Below are positions 21,901 through 42,335 of a stretch of DNA of 64,000 nucleotides, piece by piece. This DNA is from Mytilus edulis (taxonomy: Eukaryota). The notes under the pieces were generated by a model that did not search any database, had not been told where the DNA came from, and saw only the letters and a list, made by a program, of their open reading frames with translations. Location: positions 13,330,001 to 13,394,000 of the forward strand of contig NC_092352.1 of NCBI RefSeq assembly GCF_963676685.1, given 5' to 3'. The translations under genes and the position numbers were made by a program. Numbering within the stretch: the first letter of the stretch is position 1; every line of letters begins with the position of its first letter.

Positions 21901-22570
21901 CCTTGGTGCAAACTGGAAATCGGTAGATCTCGACATTCTTAGCATGTTTGCCACTACCAGATAAGTTCTTTTATAGTTTATAAGACATATGGCAATTAAT
22001 GCATGTTACCCAGCTGTTCTTTTTTAGCCAAGGCAGCCATTATTCTTGACAGACAAGATTAAAATACAAAAACTTTGTGTTGGATATGCAAAGGAACAGT
22101 TCAAGACGGTTTTGCAGGTTCAGTGGAAAAGATTTTAGAAAAAGTTTACAACAACAGACCTAATAGACCTAGGAGGGCTAAACACTAGTCTTATACTGCC
22201 ACATGTAAATTTGTTTTGTTGAACTGGTATTGTTTAAATTCCTGTATTTCAGTTTCCAATTTTTGTTTCCTCAACATAGTTTATTAAGTGCTAAAAGAAA
22301 ACCTTTTTTTTTAATTGTCACAGATTGACATTTTGTTATTTACTTATGCTGTGTGCTATATTTTTCTTCCCATAAAATTATTTGCCTAAACCTCATTTCT
22401 CAATCTGCTGCTATTGGCCATTTTTAGATATTTTTTTTTGAAACACTAGCACAGAGGTCAAAGTGAAATATTTTCTGTTTGATAGAAAGGTTAATACTAC
22501 TTTAAAGATATGTTTCAGAGATACTATATTATGTGGGGCTGGTGAGAATTTTAAAGCAAGAATATACTAT

Positions 22571-23550
22571 AGTATTAATGTATGGACTTTTTCATATTGG
22601 CCCTGTAACATGCCCGAGGTGTTAATAATGGCCAAGGATGGTTGTAATGGCCCTGAGGCAACGCCGAGGGCCATTACAACTGTCCGAGGCCATTATTAAT
22701 ATCAAGGGCATGTTACAGGGCCAATATGAAAAAGTCCATATATTGATACTTTTATTAACCAACTATAAAGGCATCTTCATTCAAGAACAGTCTTCGAGTC
22801 TCGGATCCAAAATATTATACAGCTATCCACAAACTACAACAGGACCAATACAGAAAGGCCCGTTTCATAACATTTTTTATTAAATTGTTTTAATTCTTCG
22901 ATTAAACAAAGAGTAGGAAACTTACCGTGAAGAAGATACAGGAAATTTTTTTCATAGCTGAACTTCTACTTGTCTTTTCGCATGGAATTTTGGTCAACAT
23001 TGTGACTGTCAGATGTAATTTCTGATTTCTCATCCAAGTACTTAATTTTATGCTATTAAAATTCATTTCATCTAGCAAATAAAAAGTAGCTGGGAAGAAT
23101 AAATCAGACAGTTTAACTATTCTTTAGTCTGCAATCTGAGGATTGAACAACGGAAATTAAACAGTGATAATAATCGAAAGTCGTACTCGAAAAAGGCTGT
23201 GAAATATTTCCGTTTCAAGTCGTTACAAAACAATGTGAATGAACATCATTTAAACTTGTTTTTATGATATTAAGTTTTAAAAAAAATAAAAAAATGTCAC
23301 GCTTATTTAAAGAAATAAACGACATTTTGATTTAATCGATGTCCCGTTTCATCTGTTCATAATGCATGACTGTGATTTCGTAATGCACGGGTGTGATTTC
23401 GTAATGCATGACTGATATTTCGTAATGCATGACTGAGATTTCGTAATGACTGGCTGTAGCAATTTTTCCGTTCATAATAACCAGATGTTGAAATTTTCCC
23501 TTTATAAAGCATGGGCATTTCTATACATATTGTAGTAAGTTGGTTAATAA
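22571..23550. mobile_element. Element with a 180-bp terminal palindrome and a subterminal inverted repeat (Crypton-like non-autonomous architecture)
   Basis: Hairpin at 22571-22750 centred on GGC-AAC-GCC. TTATTAACCAACT (22752) pairs with AGTTGGTTAATAA (23538-23550). Internal TAATGCATGACTG.GATTTCG repeats. Superfamily is inference. Confidence 0.7.
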
Positions 23551-34971: not shown

Positions 34972-35448
34972 TTCATGCAGTTCATCCACAGATACGAATC
35001 CTTCATAAATGACCTTCACCGATACCTTTTCTGTTTTACGGCATTACCCTGGAATAAAATACCATATATAATGAGGTCATATAATAAAATGAACAAATGG
35101 GAAGAAACAGTTTGGGTTTGAATGCTATAATCGAGCGTATAAAACGTTATTATTTAGTTTAATAAGTGTTGCCCTTTATCTGATTGTCGTAATGGTGAGG
35201 CCGTAAGCTTGAAGGGTAAATTACGGAAAATATTTTTTTTTATATGTATCTTTTTGATTACTTTAGAAAAGGGAAATACAGTTATGACTTAAAATTTTCT
35301 TGAAGTTGATTTTTTCATCTTCATTGATGTAATTCAAATATTCTCTATGGAAAGTTTGATGATTTATATTTCCTTATTGCACCTCGTCTGTGGGAAAGCG
35401 GAAGTTGCCGTACACATCATCTTTCTTTTTGCATGCCGAATTCAGACG
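34972..35448. promoter_or_regulatory. Bidirectional promoter/5'UTR region of NDUFB10 and RPL3, with an ETS-type site and a TCT/5'TOP tract
   Basis: Divergent ATGs at 34971 and 35449; GCGGAAGT at 35398-35405; pyrimidine tract CTTTCTTTTT at 35421-35430, typical of ribosomal protein gene starts. Confidence 0.8.
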
Positions 35449-38400
35449 ATGGTAACGTGTACTTTCTATCCGTTTAAATCCATTCATTTTCCACGATATA
35501 AATGATAATTTTATAGCCTCATTTACAAAATTAAACATCTAATTACATCTCTATTAGTTTTGATTTAAATTTGAGGCATATTTTATATTTAAAACTGTCC
35601 TCGCGCTGATGTCTGAAAACTGAATATTTACCATTTGCCGAAAAAGTTGCAACTTCACTTGTGTCCCTCTTTGATTATAAGTATATCTTTAAAACCGAGT
35701 ACCAAGTAGAGCTTTTACTTCGAGTGTAATGTTATTTATATTACCAATTTGTTTGTAGAAAATAAACCCGATCCATTGGTTCTTTAAAGCAAGACCAGAT
35801 AAATATAAAATTTACCCCATTCTCGTTAACCAACTCTCCTAATATAATGAAAAAGGTTCAATTCCAGACAACTCGCCCAACTAAAATTATTCGCTTGAAC
35901 TTTTGACAAATTTCAATCACTTTCCATTGAGGTAGTCCAAATAATTGTGACGTCTGGCAAGGCTATTTTAATTTTTTTCTGGGACGCCTTCAATGTGGGA
36001 TCAAAAAAAGTCAAAATCGAAAAATACCCACAGCAGACGGCATGATTATCTGGACTACCATTGAGGTATCAGATATTATTTTGTTTTATGATGTTGAAAT
36101 TTTACTGGAAGCTGTATGGTATCCAGTAATGGCAGACAAATAGCGATAAGGTGTATTACAGAGCATATTAAAGGACTAAAGAAATGCTATCGCTCAACAA
36201 CTTTTGTACCTGTTAGTCTTGAGAGATGACAGTTTTGAATATTGCTGAGCTCATAAAGTCCATAAGCAAAGTTGTTAAGTGTTTATGTAGCTCTTCCTGG
36301 ACATTGTCAATTCTTTAATTTGGCTGTCTTGAGTGCTGGCCAAGTACTTCTCAATCTGTTGTGAATTTCAAACACTGCATTGTGGCTTAAACATGTGTAA
36401 CAGAACTATTTTTTTTTGATACATGTATGACTGCAATATTTTTTTTAAATTTGGTCGTATGTAAAGAGAAATTGAATGTACATGATATCTGTATAAAATA
36501 AATTGTTGATTCAAATTGTAAGAAGTTTTATTTTATTTTTATATTTTCAGTCTCATAGAAAATTCTCGGCTCCTCGGCACGGTTCTAAAGGCTTCCTCCC
36601 CAAGAAGAGGGCCAAACGTCACCGTGGAAAAGTGAAGTCATTTCCCAATGATGACAAGAACAAGCCAGTTCATCTCACAGCATTTATTGGATACAAGGCT
36701 GGAATGTCCCATATTGTCCGAGAAGTTGATAGACCAGGATCCAGTATGTTGATTTTAAAGTTATTTTATAGTTAATATAAAAGGAATATTATGAGACTAC
36801 ATTTGTAGTAAGGACATGTATTAAATCAAGTACCATAAGTGTTCTTCCTGGAAGGTTTTTGAATGCAAAACCTTGCTATTCATATCCATATAGTTTCTAA
36901 TTTCCCGTGCCTTCCTTAATACTTTTACCCGACAATATCAAATATCAAGGTAGTTATTTACAAGCTTTTCAAATGGTATAAACATTTCACTGATGGAAAC
37001 TAGATCTGTGACAATTTTGTAACTTATTCTCATAAGATTCAATAAAATGCCAGCTACAATTTCGCAAACGATTTCAGATGATTGATGGGGCAATCACCAG
37101 TGCTTCTGCCCACAAGTCAAATGCAGTCTTCACACTGAGTGGCAGCCCAGGCTGGTAAAATTGCTCTTGGGCCTGTTAAAATCATATCTACAGGCCAACA
37201 GAATCTTAACTAAAAAAATTCAAAAATTGAGCTCCGGGTCTGTATAGATTTTGAAGTTCATCGTGAAGACTGCAAATGACATTTTTCCTAGACTGGGACT
37301 TTGGACTACTCATTGAGTCTTGTTCAGACTATTTTGATGAATATAAAATTTAATAAATCATGTGGTTATTTTAAAGTTGATTTATCAGGTCAGGAATAAC
37401 CACCAATTGGTGGATTATACCTCAATTGACGTATAATCCACCAATTGACATATAATGGTATAGACCAATTGGTGTATAATTCATTGTTTTTCAAAACAAA
37501 TTATTCTACCAAAATGGAGCATTGTTTTCTTAAAACCATATTATGGTATGAAAACTTGTCAAACATTTCTAGTTTAGTATAGTGACATAACATATTGCAT
37601 TTAATCAATAATTGTATTTGCAGTTTCTTCTATTGTTATCTTGTCAATTCTTGATTGGCAAATTTACCTGTAATCACCTGTCAATGGACATCATTATTGT
37701 CTGCAGTCATGTGATCATGAGTACAACTCCACAGGTGAATGGAGCTCTTTGTTAATACTTGACTTTCATTATCTAAAGTCAATCATGGTCAATAGTACAA
37801 ATGTTTCAACAAAAGAATTGATGTACACATGCATTCTCAAGAGATGCAGCAGGCTTTGACAAAACTGAAACTTTCGGAGGACTCAATAAGGGTCATAAAA
37901 TAGGTTGCAAGTTGCAAAATCATGCTCCTATCTCACACTAGCATTTTATTACAAAACATTTGCATTATACGTCAATTGGTCTATACCAATATACCTCAAT
38001 TGGTGGATTATACGTCAATTGAGGTATAATCCACCAATTGGTGGTTATTCCTGACCTGTTTATACAAACTGACATTTCAATTTTATTTTATAGAATCTCA
38101 CAAGAAAGAGATCGTAGAAGCTGTAACTATTTTGGAAGCACCACCCATGATGGTTGTAGGTGTAGTTGGATATATTGAAACTCCAAGTGGTTTAAGAGCA
38201 TTTAAAACCATCTTTGCTGAACATCTTAGTGAAGAGTGCAAAAGACGTTTCTACAAGAATTGGTATGAACAAAAGTTCTTTATATATTGCTGTAAAAATG
38301 ATACTTCACAGAAATTTATGAAACAACACAGGGCCTAGGTGTGTGATCTCTGTCATTATCTCTATGGATTTTCATTTCTCACAATTTTATTATTTAAAAA

Positions 38401-41400
38401 TTCCAGAGCAATTGAAAGACATATTTTGGAGTTTGTTTCTCATGGAAATCATTGTTACCAGGGAATGTAGTTTTGAAAATTTCCAATTTGAATGATTGTA
38501 CAGAGGGGGCCTTTATACTAATTGATATTAAAGCTACAAGTCAAAATCTAAACACTAGTAGAACAGACTAGATGATTAACATATAGTATATCTGTCTAAA
38601 GGTGGTTGAAAGTTCAGGATTGATATACATATAATTATACATTTATTGAATAGAACTGATTTGCTAATTTGTTTTGTGCACTCTTTCTTTTTCAATATTT
38701 ACAGGTGATTGATGCCACGAGATTGACAGTGTCTCATTATCAATCACTAGGAAAGTGGCTCAACTTGAAGCTCCTCTTGGTTTTAAACCAATGAGCTTGT
38801 TACAATGACGTTTCCGCTCATGAATATAATTTCATGATGAAACGGTTCATATTTATTTAAGGTACCGATCAAAGAAGAAGGCATTCTCCAAGTCTGCCAA
38901 GAAATGGCAGGATGAGGCTGGAAAGAAAGAGATAGAGCGTGATTTCAACAAGATGAAGAAGTACTGTAGAGTCATCCGAGTCCTTGCACATACTCAGGTA
39001 AGGCAATTATTTCGACACAAAATGTAGATACAGTGCAGTCCAGTGTATCCGCGCACCCAAGACTTGTGATTTCACTTTGTTCAACTAATAAAACCAACAA
39101 TTGGATAATACTTTTATTTCATAAAATCTTCTGTTTGTATGGTTTCACCTTTAAGATTTTGTGTAATGTATGTCCAAAATTAGGGGAACCCTGTTCTGAG
39201 AGTTCCTCAAATGTCTGGTGATATGGTGCATGCCTTCCAAAAATATCTTATTTTGAATAAAGGAAAGATTTTCTACTACAAAATTTGGCTGAATGTTAAC
39301 CAAGCACACTGCCAAGGATACATAGCAAAAGTTATTTCCATCTGATATAAATTTGACTTAAATAACACGAATTTTATCTGATGAGGCCAAATAAAAATAT
39401 ATGTGTGGTTCCAGTAACCCTACCGTCCCTACTTTTTCGGCTGAAAAATAGCCTACCCTAAATATTTTATTGTCATTTTTCATTAAGCACTGTTAAAGTC
39501 AGAATGTTGCTCCCATAGACTCAATTTAAAAAAAAAAACATAAAATAAAAAAATATCCCTACCTACCTTAACTTTTTTTCAGATGTAACTGGAACCACAC
39601 ATACTTTTTTATTTGGCCTGATGTAATTATTTTAATCGAAATTGGCCATATATTGTAAATCAAGGGATTGGAGTTGTTTATTTGATGAAATCCGCTAATG
39701 CGCTGCATCACCAGCCGCGGGGACTGGGGACTCCACTGTACGTCTTTAAAGAAACACCACAGTAATCTTAATTTGTGGTAGCGAGCTGACTGAGTGCAAG
39801 AGGTCTGGTTTAAATACCTGGTGCAGTCTAACCAAAACTGCACGTTCAAAATGACACAGGTTACATGACAACACTCGAGACATAATAAATGTAAGAACTA
39901 TAGAAACTTGTTTCTAATTTCTGGATAATAGACTTGTAAAGTAGAAAAAAATCATTGAAAAATACAGAAATAAAAACACAGTGAGAGAAAAAAAATCTAA
40001 ATGATGTGTTATTACCAGATAGGCCCATTCTAGCATTTGAATCTAATACAGCATAGCATAAACATCAAAATATTGATCAACCCTAAATGAAAATATCATT
40101 CTTTCTATTTTTGGTGGCATGATTTACGTTGTGGTGCTTAGCTTATATAATATAGTACTGAACATTGTCTTTATTGCAGACCAAGTTGATGAAGAAACGT
40201 CAAAAGAAAGCCCACATTATGGAGATCCAAGTTAATGGTGGTACCATCTCCCAGAAAGTAGACTGGGCTAGAGATTACTTTGAAAAGAGCATCCCAGTAA
40301 AGAATGTGTTTGCCCAGGATGAAAACATTGATATCATTGGTGTAACCAAGGGTAAAGGAGTAAAAGGTAAGATTGTAAACAAAAGAAAGGTGTTGAATAA
40401 CATTGTTTCAAAAAGTTTTAAAATCCACTAGTACAGAAACAAAACTTGTCCCTCTATATGGCTACAATTTTTTTTTTAAATTTTCACCTAGTCCAAATCA
40501 ATAATTACTAGTCTGGGGCACAAGACTAGTGGCTAACAGTGCAGACTGGTACAAGTATTACAGTAGCTTTCTTTTAAAGAGACTGTTTATTACATCAGTT
40601 CAAATCATGAAGAATTTTGTCATATTTAATATAACATCTGTTGAACTTGTATTCTTAGATTGAGTTTCTGTTAAATCTGTCTCGTGACTACTGAAAGATC
40701 CACTCGTGTTAAAAGGATAAATGCAAAAATATCAAAAGTATTGGTAAAGCTCTCTGTGACAACTCCCAACATTATCCTCCAGTTTAATATATATAATGTA
40801 TTATGTTAATAGGTGTAACATCCAGATGGCACTGTAAGAAATTACCAAGGAAGACACACAAAGGTCTACGTAAGGTAGCCTGTATTGGAGCTTGGCATCC
40901 AAGTCGTGTCCAGTTCACTGTGGCCAGAGCTGGACAGAAGGGTTACCATCACAGGACTGAAATCAACAAAAAGATCTATCGTCTTGGTGATGGATACCAC
41001 ACTAAGGAGGGCAAGCTTATCACAAGCAATGGTTCTACTGAATATGATGCTGATGAGAAGCCAATCACTCCAATGGGAGGATTCCCTCATTATGGAGAAG
41101 TATCAAACGACTTTGTCATGGTTAAGGGATGTTGTGTTGGACCCAAGAAGAGAGTTGTCACACTTAGAAAGGTACATTTTATTTAAACTTCAACATCATT
41201 ATGAAAAAAAATGGAATTGCTGTCAATGAAGAATAAAACAAGTATGTGTTAATATTATAACACTGTGTTATATACAGTTAATTATTTTTGTTAAATTTGA
41301 GAATCAATCAATGATGAAACACATGGAAAGTATCCCTGCCGGGATACTCTGAATTTGATGAAGATTTCACCCATGTTGCCTTCCTTCTGATGATTGATTC

Positions 41401-42335
41401 TTGAAATACATGTCAATTTTAAATACAGTTAAAATAAATACTATCTGGGAACACATGCACATTGTTGCTTTACAATAGTATATAAATTTACATTTTATGT
41501 TTGTTTCTGTTTACAGTCTCTCTTGGCATCGTTCAAAAAGAAGCAAATGGAGAAGATTGACCTGAAATTCATTGACACCGCCAGTAAATTTGGTCATGGA
41601 CGTTTCCAGACATTCAAGGAGAAACACAACTTTATGGTAGGTTTAATTGTATACTTTCAGGCATCATTATTTAAATAGATATATGAAGATGTGGTGCGAG
41701 TCCCAATGAGACAACTCTCCATCCAAATACAATTTTTAAAAGTAAACCATTATAGGTCAAGGTACAGACTTCAACACAGAGCCTTGGCTCACACCGAACA
41801 AAAAGCTATGAAGGGCCCCAAAATTACTAGTGTAAAACCATTCAAACGGGAAAACCAACGGTCTAATCTATATTTAAAAAAAAAACGAGAAATATGAAGT
41901 AAACACGATAAATAAAGGGGGTAAAAATAAGTTGTAGGGAGTTGCAATATAACCCTTGTTAATTTGGAGCTGTTAATCTAAATGATGAAACACGTGGATG
42001 ATGTCCCTGCCAGGATATCCTGAATTTAGTGAAGATTTAACCATGTTGCCTTCCTTCTGATAGATTAACTATTCAATTGTTGGGCTTTCACAAACACCAA
42101 ACCAGGCAAAACTACAGATTACTAAAATGATTTCGGTAATACTTTACAAAATCACTATATAAACGTACATATTTATTACATTTAAGTGTTGTTTTATTTG
42201 CATTTCTCTTGTAAACAGGATGATACTCTTATTTAAAAAGTATCCACCATGCTCACCTGCATTTCTAATATATGTGTTTTCCTATTTTAGGGTCCACTCA
42301 AGAAAGATGCTGTAGCAAAAACAGAGGCTTCTTAG
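35449..42335 (+). CDS. RPL3: 60S ribosomal protein L3 (uL3), 403 aa, 8 coding exons
   Basis: Exons 35449-35451 (ATG), 36551-36743, 38094-38262, 38862-38997, 40180-40366, 40813-41171, 41517-41636 and 42291-42335 sum to 1212 nt in frame. Translation [13 protein letters not shown]...[30 protein letters not shown]...[13 protein letters not shown]...GPLKKD. AATAAA at 42355-42360. Confidence 0.98.
35932..36058. mobile_element. Small MITE in RPL3 intron 1
   Basis: GTAGTCCA ... TGGACTAC flanked by a CATTGAG direct repeat; its core is also present, inverted, at about 32293-32329. Confidence 0.8.
37124..37272. mobile_element. Short MITE with 6-bp TSD in RPL3 intron 2
   Basis: CAAATG|CAGTCTTCAC ... 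GTGAAGACTG|CAAATG. Confidence 0.8.
37386..38058. mobile_element. Fold-back element with TIRs of about 95 bp and a 5-bp TSD in RPL3 intron 2
   Basis: TTTAT|CAGGTCAGGAATAACCACCAATTGGTGGATTATACCTCAATTGACGTATAATCC ... perfect inverse ...GTTATTCCTGACCTG|TTTAT. Confidence 0.92.
38705..38861 (+). promoter_or_regulatory. Candidate unproductive (PTC-containing) 5' extension of RPL3 exon 4 via an alternative 3' splice site
   Basis: Branch-like GCTAAT at 38663-38668, pyrimidine tract at 38681-38693, CAG at 38702-38704. Splicing from exon 3 gives TG|G TGA (Trp, then stop). The segment contains three hairpins. Confidence 0.65.
39385..39618. mobile_element. MITE with 3-bp TSD (TGA) in RPL3 intron 4
   Basis: GGCCAAATAAAAA...TGTGTGGTTCCAGT / ACTGGAACCACACA...TTTTTATTTGGCC. 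Confidence 0.85.
41301..41400 (+). ncRNA. SNORD83: Box C/D snoRNA, U83/SNORD83 family, copy 1 (RPL3 intron 6)
   Basis: Terminal stem GAATCAATCA/TGATTGATTC; C box ATGATGA at 41311-41317; D' CTGA at 41349; C' TTGATGA at 41355; D CTGA at 41387-41390. The guide TGTTGCCTTCCTT matches vertebrate U83 as I recall it and is complementary to 18S AAGGAAGGCAGCA. Confidence 0.9.
41972..42069 (+). ncRNA. SNORD83: Box C/D snoRNA, U83/SNORD83 family, copy 2 (RPL3 intron 7)
   Basis: Terminal stem GTTAATCTA/TAGATTAAC; C box ATGATGA at 41982-41988; D box CTGA at 42057-42060; identical guide CCATGTTGCCTTCCTT; paralogous to copy 1. Confidence 0.9.

Follow-up and report, generated by a model that had tools for sequence, protein, structure and literature searches.

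A covarying bulged-hairpin motif in intron 3 of Mytilus edulis RPL3 and its possible role in an unproductive-splicing switch

The RPL3 locus and the two acceptors of intron 3

The 64,000-nt stretch of Mytilus edulis DNA analysed here (contig NC_092352.1, positions 13,330,001 to 13,394,000; hereafter the window, in whose own numbering positions are given) carries on its + strand a complete gene for RPL3, which encodes the ribosomal protein (RP) uL3. Intron 3 of this gene has two competing 3' splice sites, of which the downstream one yields the coding mRNA and the upstream one a rare mRNA with a premature termination codon (PTC), and between the two sites stand two copies of a bulged-hairpin motif that recurs in the orthologous intron of other animals. 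The exon limits were read by eye and then fixed by RNA-seq junction reads, and are as follows.

About 35421-35452, + strand: exon 1, with the ATG at 35450 (reading and junction reads)
36551-36744, + strand: exon 2 (reading and junction reads)
38094-38262, + strand: exon 3 (translation ...FYKN, then TG of a Trp codon; junction reads, loose ends at 38094 and 38262)
38862-38997, + strand: exon 4 (translation and junctions)
40180-40366, + strand: exon 5 (reading and junction reads)
40813-41171, + strand: exon 6 (reading and junction reads)
41517-41636, + strand: exon 7 (reading and junction reads)
42291 to about 42375, + strand: exon 8 (reading and junction reads)

RPL3 is present as one locus in the 1.37-Gb assembly. 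The encoded protein is 99% identical to the uL3-like protein of Mytilus galloprovincialis, with which it groups, within the bivalves, in a quick maximum-likelihood (ML) tree. The features of intron 3 are listed below; hairpins are written as RNA, with the successive helix strands and bulges separated by hyphens.

38263-38861, + strand: intron 3, 599 nt, phase 2 (GT..AG junction, 914 reads)
38663-38668, + strand: candidate branch site GCTAAT (from the sequence; predicted branch point)
38681-38693, + strand: pyrimidine tract CTCTTTCTTTTTC of the upstream acceptor (from the sequence)
38702-38704, + strand: upstream, unproductive acceptor CAG (junction 38262^38705)
38705-38861, + strand: 157-nt poison segment, a 5' extension of exon 4 (fold, reads, in-frame TGA at 38706-38708)
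38705-38747, + strand: hairpin 1, with a 10-bp outer stem, an asymmetric internal loop CCAC/AU and a 5-bp inner stem (fold)
38768-38798, + strand: hairpin 2, motif copy AAGCUC-CUC-UUGGUU-loop-AACCAA-U-GAGCUU (strict scan)
38809-38844, + strand: hairpin 3, motif copy CGUUUC-CGC-UCAUGAA-loop-UUCAUGA-U-GAAACG (strict scan)
38859-38861, + strand: productive acceptor AAG, in the context TTTAAG (914 junction reads)

Measured against the consensus, the upstream acceptor is strong (C at -3, 80% pyrimidines in -22..-3) and the productive one, with A at -3 and an AU-rich tract, is weak. An earlier, sequence-only reading of this locus had placed a stronger acceptor 157 nt upstream of the weak TTTAAG, and the GCTAAT, the tract and the CAG ending at 38704 were all found in place. 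Exon 3 ends in ...AAT TG at 38262 and intron 3 begins with GTATGA at 38263, while the upstream CAG is followed by GTGA; splicing from 38262 to 38705 thus reads TG/G TGA, with the stop at 38706-38708. This premature stop lies more than 50 nt upstream of the later exon junctions, of which there are four, and here too the same reading, which had described an immediate TGG-TGA stop with four junctions downstream, agrees with the sequence and with the junctions as confirmed by reads. The PTC mRNA made from the upstream acceptor would be an expected substrate of nonsense-mediated mRNA decay (NMD). The region of the extension (261 nt searched) is single copy in the 1.37-Gb genome, which rules out an origin from a repeat or transposon.

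An unproductive isoform of RPL3

Reads across the predicted 38262^38705 junction were looked for and found in X24, a run of raw RNA-seq reads from the same species; about 19% of this run was read. The junction is supported by 7 reads from 6 start positions, has GT..AG ends and is covered by up to 71 nt on the shorter side, against 914 reads for the productive junction 38262^38862, which gives an unproductive share of 0.76%. It is the only alternative GT..AG junction with at least 3 reads among the five RPL3 introns examined; for each of the four others 358-970 junction reads were counted and no alternative junction reached 3 reads. Read depth in X24 was about 9.7 in the bin 38640-38784, compared to 0 and 1.3 in two bins of the upstream part of the intron. 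Since the junction reads are accompanied by a rise in depth only downstream of the upstream acceptor, the PTC isoform of Mytilus RPL3 is real and is rare at steady state. A paralogue or pseudogene as the origin of this junction was ruled out, the RPL3 locus being single in the genome.

Sequence variation was compared on either side of the upstream acceptor. In the 442 nt preceding it 6-7 single-nucleotide polymorphisms (SNPs) and several insertions or deletions were seen per contig, as opposed to one SNP in the 157-nt extension, and this lower number is a weak hint of constraint.

Structure of the extension

RNAfold gave 38705-38861 a minimum free energy (MFE) of -45.2 kcal/mol (z = -3.75), and only 1 of 200 dinucleotide shuffles was as stable. 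In a GC-corrected stability ranking of 1597 segments of the same length from the whole 64 kb, the extension came 9th, and just 1 of 449 GC-matched windows was as stable; the other extreme windows included transposon-like inverted repeats (at 22.5 kb and in intron 2). The fold consists of exactly the three hairpins, at 38705-38747, 38768-38798 and 38809-38844, that had been proposed from the sequence.

Hairpins 2 and 3 stand in tandem, 10 nt apart, between the two acceptors. From the end of hairpin 3 to the productive AG is 17 nt, and a branch-like UUCAU lies in its 3' arm, 27 nt from the AG. Hairpin 3 may also bring the TGAC branch candidate at 38806 nearer to this AG, as the sequence-only reading had suggested. 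Hairpin 1 resembles them in topology (a CCAC bulge opposite AU) without having the conserved letters; it had no covariance-model match (see below) and is not conserved in the other bivalve, and the sole SNP seen in the extension (38718 C>A) falls in its bulge. An extended hairpin 1 domain that would mask the upstream tract (CUUUCUU with AGGAAAG at 38749-38755) is predicted with a z of only -1.8 and is a weak idea only.

The bulged-hairpin motif in orthologous introns

Hairpins 2 and 3 are copies of one motif. On its 5' side a helix strand ending in CUC (or UUC) is followed by a three-base C-N-C bulge and by a second helix starting with U(C); after an apex of 3 to about 40 nt the return strand ends in (G)A, and then come one bulged U and the GAG (or GAA) that closes the first helix. 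Orthologous loci were collected by scanning metagenome contigs with the exon-3 peptide, which returned 80 RPL3 loci (designated below by L and a number), most of them cDNA-like or without an intron at TG/G; the orthology of the TG/G intron with human intron 3 and worm intron 1 was taken from PMC4937301. An intron at exactly the same place (TG/G after ..YKN) was present in 13 distinct genomic loci of other organisms, and 2 more loci break off inside it. These introns are otherwise unalignable, and almost all of them hold one to three copies of the motif.

A strict scan found 12 copies in the 4784 nt of 14 complete orthologous introns and 2 in partial introns. None was found on the antisense strand of the orthologous introns or in the rest of the window (127 kb, both strands), the parts of these loci beyond the intron (97 kb) held one, and shuffled introns gave a mean of 0.076. 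Counted by locus, the strict scan was positive in 12 of the 16 RPL3 loci of other animals with a full or partial intron at this codon position, and covariance-model matches bring in three more. Nine columns of the 14-copy alignment do not vary, and 90% of its cells take part in pairs; every one of the 14 copies has the same C-G and U-A closing pairs, C.C bulge and bulged U. The covariation score was 0.646, compared to 0.194 in shuffles (0/500 reached it) and to 0.07-0.14 when the partners were slid. Both helices covary. Pairing and covariation, with purine and pyrimidine in either orientation, are likewise seen at pairs that had no role in the selection rule. RNAalifold alone predicts the same structure.

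Two covariance models were built, one (R1) from the motif copies and one (R2) from the 12 non-Mytilus copies only. R1, which scored hairpins 2 and 3 at 33.8 and 34.8 bits, found matches in loci that had contributed no training sequence (L030, E 7e-4; L029, E 5e-3 and 6e-2; L053, E 0.13), and all 22 of its 22 matches with E<0.9 fell on the sense strand of intron 3, which makes up ~5% of the search space. With R2, run unfiltered over the 64-kb window, the best match was hairpin 3 at 27.5 bits (E 4.4e-5), followed by hairpin 2 at 25.8 bits (E 1.3e-4), with the next match at E 0.23. In a scan of the whole 1.37-Gb mussel genome, in which only 150 of the first-look candidates were scored, hairpins 2 and 3 were the only sites at E<=10, with hairpin 3 as the top match.

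A near-perfect copy of the motif (GUCUC-CGC-UCGCUCA...UGAGCGA-U-GAGGU; covariance-model E 0.23) was also noted at L049:224-276. It sits in exon-3 coding sequence of a gene that is intronless there and probably non-animal, and it may be due to chance or be lineage-specific; related contigs are without it.

Carriers of the motif

The taxa of the loci were assigned from the best named uL3 hits and a quick ML tree, the exon translations being joined for identity tables and tree. L005 is sister to Mya, which makes it a heterodont bivalve, and carries the motif; L019, also a carrier, groups with a mite among the chelicerates; L021, L023, L027, L029, L030, L031, L053 and L058 form one pancrustacean-side clade, in which the neighbouring intron 2 has been lost and the TG/G intron kept, and of which L023 gave no motif match in intron 3. 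The partial locus L032 carries the motif and is closest to Hymenoptera by best hit, while L006/L009 and L010 are placed no more closely than within the animals. L081, a long branch with about 65% identity, is without the motif. None of the fetched loci is vertebrate-like, all having <=76% identity to mammal-type uL3. Judging from this distribution of sequences, the motif goes back at least to the ancestor shared by molluscs and arthropods, because its carriers include bivalves, a chelicerate and the pancrustacean-side clade.

The heterodont bivalve L005 also has an AAG acceptor with a CAG 159 nt upstream of it; three motif-type hairpins lie in the interval, and the intron shares the blocks GCUCCUCU and CAUGAUGA(A/G)AC with Mytilus. 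The sequence-only reading had staked its case on conservation of the upstream AG and of the stems in related species: this holds for hairpins 2 and 3, which extend beyond the bivalves, and for the CAG layout in L005, and it does not hold for hairpin 1.

These comparisons bear on the possibility of splicing noise, in which a fortuitously strong cryptic acceptor would be used in <1% of transcripts and the structure would be incidental. The low steady-state level of the isoform would fit such an origin, as would hairpin 1, which is not conserved and carries a common SNP. However, a model built from other phyla recovers hairpins 2 and 3, the same succession of CAG, three hairpins and AAG is found in a heterodont bivalve, and the other four introns have no comparable alternative junction at similar depth. 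Noise is accordingly very improbable, having already been largely refuted by the motif scan, the covariation and the model results.

A further alternative is that the hairpins are a constitutive structural aid to splicing, which would shorten the distance from branch to AG and hide decoy AGs or tracts, as the zipper stems of yeast do, with no feedback and with the upstream junction as a by-product. The productive acceptor is weak, and a weak AAG recurs in L005, L006 and L058; hairpin 3 lies between a TGAC word (38806) and the AG; the 5' strand of the motif is pyrimidine-rich and in L010 ends in CAG, so that pairing would mask a decoy; and a structural splicing enhancer is documented in yeast RPL7B (PMC12311795). 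Pure structure, on the other hand, explains neither the invariance of the closing pairs, the C.C bulge and the bulged U in 14/14 copies nor the tandem arrangement and the restriction to one gene in the genome. The RPL7B enhancer is itself a target of autoregulation, so that a structural aid and a regulated switch are not exclusive. As the sole role of the hairpins, a constitutive aid is considered rather unlikely.

Other RNA classes

RPL3 of Mytilus contains two U83/U83B-like box C/D small nucleolar RNAs (snoRNAs), at 41303-41398 (intron 6) and 41974-42067 (intron 7), with Rfam scores of 34-36 bits, near or below gathering. Reads from a size-selected small-RNA library show that both copies are expressed and place their 5' ends at 41306 and 41977. 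The C-box region of the two copies reads AUGAUGAAAC, and the same ten letters occur in the 3' arm of hairpin 3.

The extension could in principle be a small non-coding RNA gene of this sort (a snoRNA, a microRNA (miRNA) or a mirtron), given that RPL3 is a snoRNA host and that hairpin 3 holds these ten letters. Yet no match to intron 3 was obtained in Rfam 15 even at E<=10, there is no D box before the exon, and the small-RNA library gave 0 reads on 38640-38861, compared to mean depths of 26 and 12, with sharp ends, on the two U83 copies, which served as a positive control; on these three counts a box C/D or H/ACA snoRNA was rejected. The hairpins, at 31-36 nt, are too short for a miRNA precursor, and most motif copies elsewhere read GAUGAG, which is not a C box. 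A non-coding RNA gene in the extension is therefore extremely improbable.

A kink-turn was likewise rejected: the bulged strand is CNC-UC without GA, the tandem G.A pairs are absent, and the GAG-CUC beside the bulge is Watson-Crick paired with covariation.

Proposed mechanism

We propose, with a probability of roughly 0.6 for the reading as a whole, that Mytilus RPL3 is subject to a regulated unproductive-splicing switch. The weak downstream AAG gives the coding mRNA and the strong upstream CAG adds 157 nt that start with a stop. The productive branch point would have to fall downstream of 38704, in a region almost filled by hairpins 2 and 3, and these tandem hairpins would act as the cis-sensor of a feedback loop. 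A specific protein, most likely free uL3, would bind and lock them and would thereby hide the branch-point/pyrimidine-tract region of the productive acceptor; the spliceosome would then shift to the upstream unit (GCUAAU, strong tract, CAG), the PTC isoform would be made and presumably degraded by NMD, and output would fall.

The most economical candidate for the bound protein is uL3, because the motif is confined to its own gene, because L10a, L30, L22 and S14 act in this way and because RPL3L, a uL3 paralogue, has been found in human cells to crosslink with intron 3 of RPL3 and to drive production of the NMD isoform (PMC12811116). Direct binding by uL3 is nevertheless graded somewhat short of even odds. 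The full proposal, in which the motif is a direct uL3-binding element ('L3RE') of the RPL3 pre-mRNA that is older than the split between Lophotrochozoa and Ecdysozoa and maybe pan-bilaterian, and through which free uL3 redirects or blocks the productive 3' splice site, is put forward as a tentative one, a shade more doubtful still. If true, the L3RE would be a conserved cis-sensor missed by earlier cross-phylum sequence comparison.

The trans-factor that binds the motif might also not be uL3 but, for instance, a splicing regulator or a factor that coordinates RPs, in which case RPL3 would be regulated and not autoregulated. The isoform ratio in human cells is set by hnRNP H1, KHSRP and NPM, all of which bind intron 3 (PMC3177206), and no rRNA look-alike of the motif was found. 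But with one target hairpin pair in 1.37 Gb, kept for more than half a billion years in one RP gene, the simplest candidate is the gene's own product; a uL3 paralogue does crosslink to the human intron (PMC12811116), and autoregulation through an intron element is the rule for RPL10A, RPL30, RPL22 and RPS14. Such a factor is judged unlikely.

Several observations weigh against a regulated switch driven by uL3. The junction 38262^38705 was not seen in two runs from other studies that were available only as contigs, a form in which rare isoforms are dropped; the same two runs cover the whole or most of intron 3 at a depth of about 12-30, as compared to exon depths of thousands. The share of 0.76% could also be the level of a tolerated cryptic site. 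Several other carriers of the motif have no obvious strong upstream acceptor before it; in these the intron may be retained, or the outcome may be a different one. The motif was first spotted by eye in the same introns that were used for the enrichment count, and the raw count is post hoc, the unbiased parts being the leave-out model and the matches outside the training set. As a hairpin in the mussel's own 28S rRNA the motif scored at best 8.2 bits (E 1.2), and since it has no hairpin copy there simple rRNA mimicry is not supported; a loose long-range scan for a two-strand rRNA counterpart gave noise only. Human uL3 is modelled as acting via hnRNP H1, KHSRP and NPM on G-runs and not on a hairpin (PMC3177206), and the human crosslinking and immunoprecipitation (CLIP) signal lies upstream of the alternative acceptor and not between the acceptors. 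Mytilus intron 3 has a single G5 run; it lies at about 38505-38509, upstream of the cryptic AG by 195 nt, and the extension has none, so that the mussel cis-logic may differ from the published human G-run logic.

Other features of the locus and window

Common, synonymous-looking SNPs (30-70% of X24 reads) were seen in exons at 38164, 38940, 38977, 40242, 40275 and 40844. The metatranscriptome contig L003 encodes a protein identical to that of the window over exons 3-8, with few silent DNA differences; its positions 1-143 are unrelated to exon 2 and may reflect a chimeric assembly or an alternative 5' end.

Intron 2 contains at ~37389-38058 an element of about 670 nt that resembles a miniature inverted-repeat transposable element, with long terminal inverted repeats (GGTCAGGAATAACCACCAATTGG...); several of the 157-nt segments that fold most stably in the 64 kb are due to it. 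No other local fold in the window comes near the stability of that at 22521-22757 (MFE -95 kcal/mol per 157 nt), presumably a long inverted repeat.

In intron 4, RNA depth was 20-60 over 39365-39654, with a skipped repeat at 39523-39556, probably a repeat expressed elsewhere, and zero in the RNA-seq run over 39655-39944, in which a GC-rich island is found. Over the final ~140 nt of intron 5 (40670-40812) RNA-seq depth was about 36, ~5% of exon depth, and 139-271 in the contig runs, with many fragment ends at 40807 and no alternative junction reported. This segment is single copy and unstructured, matched nothing in Rfam and drew no small-RNA reads; it includes, at about 40780-40782, a CAG that looks like a good acceptor and has a pyrimidine tract.

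Comparison with known systems

RPL3 is among the classic metazoan cases of an RP that limits its own synthesis via unproductive splicing. Alternative splicing coupled to NMD (AS-NMD) at the orthologous intron is established in mammals and has been reported for C. elegans and Drosophila (PMC4937301, PMC2689934, PMC3177206, PMC12811116), and alternative splicing of this intron has been stated before for worm rpl-3, human RPL3 and fly RpL3 (Takei et al. 2016, PMC4937301), so that the idea of an ancient event is itself not new. The Mytilus event is probably a further case of AS-NMD, while the motif appears new: no published description was found in full-text literature searches. The claim of the sequence-only reading that a mollusc uses the same intron and the same mechanism thus stands as regards the intron, the use of an upstream acceptor and a PTC before four junctions; the antiquity was known before, and the G-runs are not shared.

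The closest parallel is the mammalian RPL3 loop (Cuccurese 2005, as described in PMC4937301; Russo 2011, PMC3177206; PMC12811116), in which a cryptic 3' site in intron 3 of the same gene extends exon 4 on its 5' side and introduces an immediate or early stop. The share of the isoform is low in both, 1.4% in human and 0.76% in mussel; the human NMD isoform, at 1.4% at steady state, rises to 42% without NMD (PMC12811116). A uL3-family protein is also implicated at intron 3 in human. The cis-elements differ, those described in human being G-runs with hnRNP H1, plus KHSRP and NPM, with no bulged hairpin. The human switch has medical weight, since in muscle it lets RPL3 make up for loss of RPL3L, which is mutated in fatal neonatal cardiomyopathy (PMC12811116).

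NMD-target isoforms also arise from the orthologous intron of C. elegans rpl-3 (Mitrovich and Anderson 2000, as described in PMC4937301) and of Drosophila RpL3 (Hansen 2009, PMC2689934), with the alternatively spliced intron showing unusual conservation among Caenorhabditis species. What is found here is, by comparison, a structural motif with a short sequence and a variable loop, which molluscs and arthropods, at the least, have in common. Takei et al. (2016, PMC4937301) found no stretch conserved across phyla in the RPL3 intron, unlike the L10ARE of RPL10A. The motif would be easily missed by sequence alignment, because it is defined by structure, with about nine fixed bases and a free loop.

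In yeast, intron RNA structures of RPL30 (a kink-turn), RPL22, RPS14B and RPL7B (a zipper stem) are read by the gene's own product to block splicing (PMC8047918, PMC12311795, PMC4838235). These elements act as outright inhibitors of splicing, and mimicry of the rRNA site is frequent among them, whereas the mussel element is a predicted 3' splice-site switch coupled to NMD; unlike that of RPL30 it is not a kink-turn, and no rRNA hairpin look-alike of it was found in 28S.

Mussel genome annotation gains a read-supported unproductive isoform, which should be flagged as non-coding. The motif offers a compact, covarying target of ~35 nt for mutation and a search model with which the element can be traced through animal phylogeny, and it makes the question of how RPL3 pre-mRNA senses uL3 directly testable. 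Its nearest counterpart in kind is the L10ARE of RPL10A/rpl-1 (PMC4937301), likewise a short element between competing splice sites of an orthologous RP intron that is shared across phyla, and the motif shares with it both its conservation between phyla in one orthologous intron and its absence from other sequence. The L10ARE is a conserved sequence of ~40 nt between alternative 5' sites and is bound directly by the encoded protein, whereas the RPL3 motif takes the form of 1-3 copies of a hairpin of 30-60 nt, defined by its structure and about 9 invariant nt, lies upstream of the productive 3' site and is a putative binding site of uL3.

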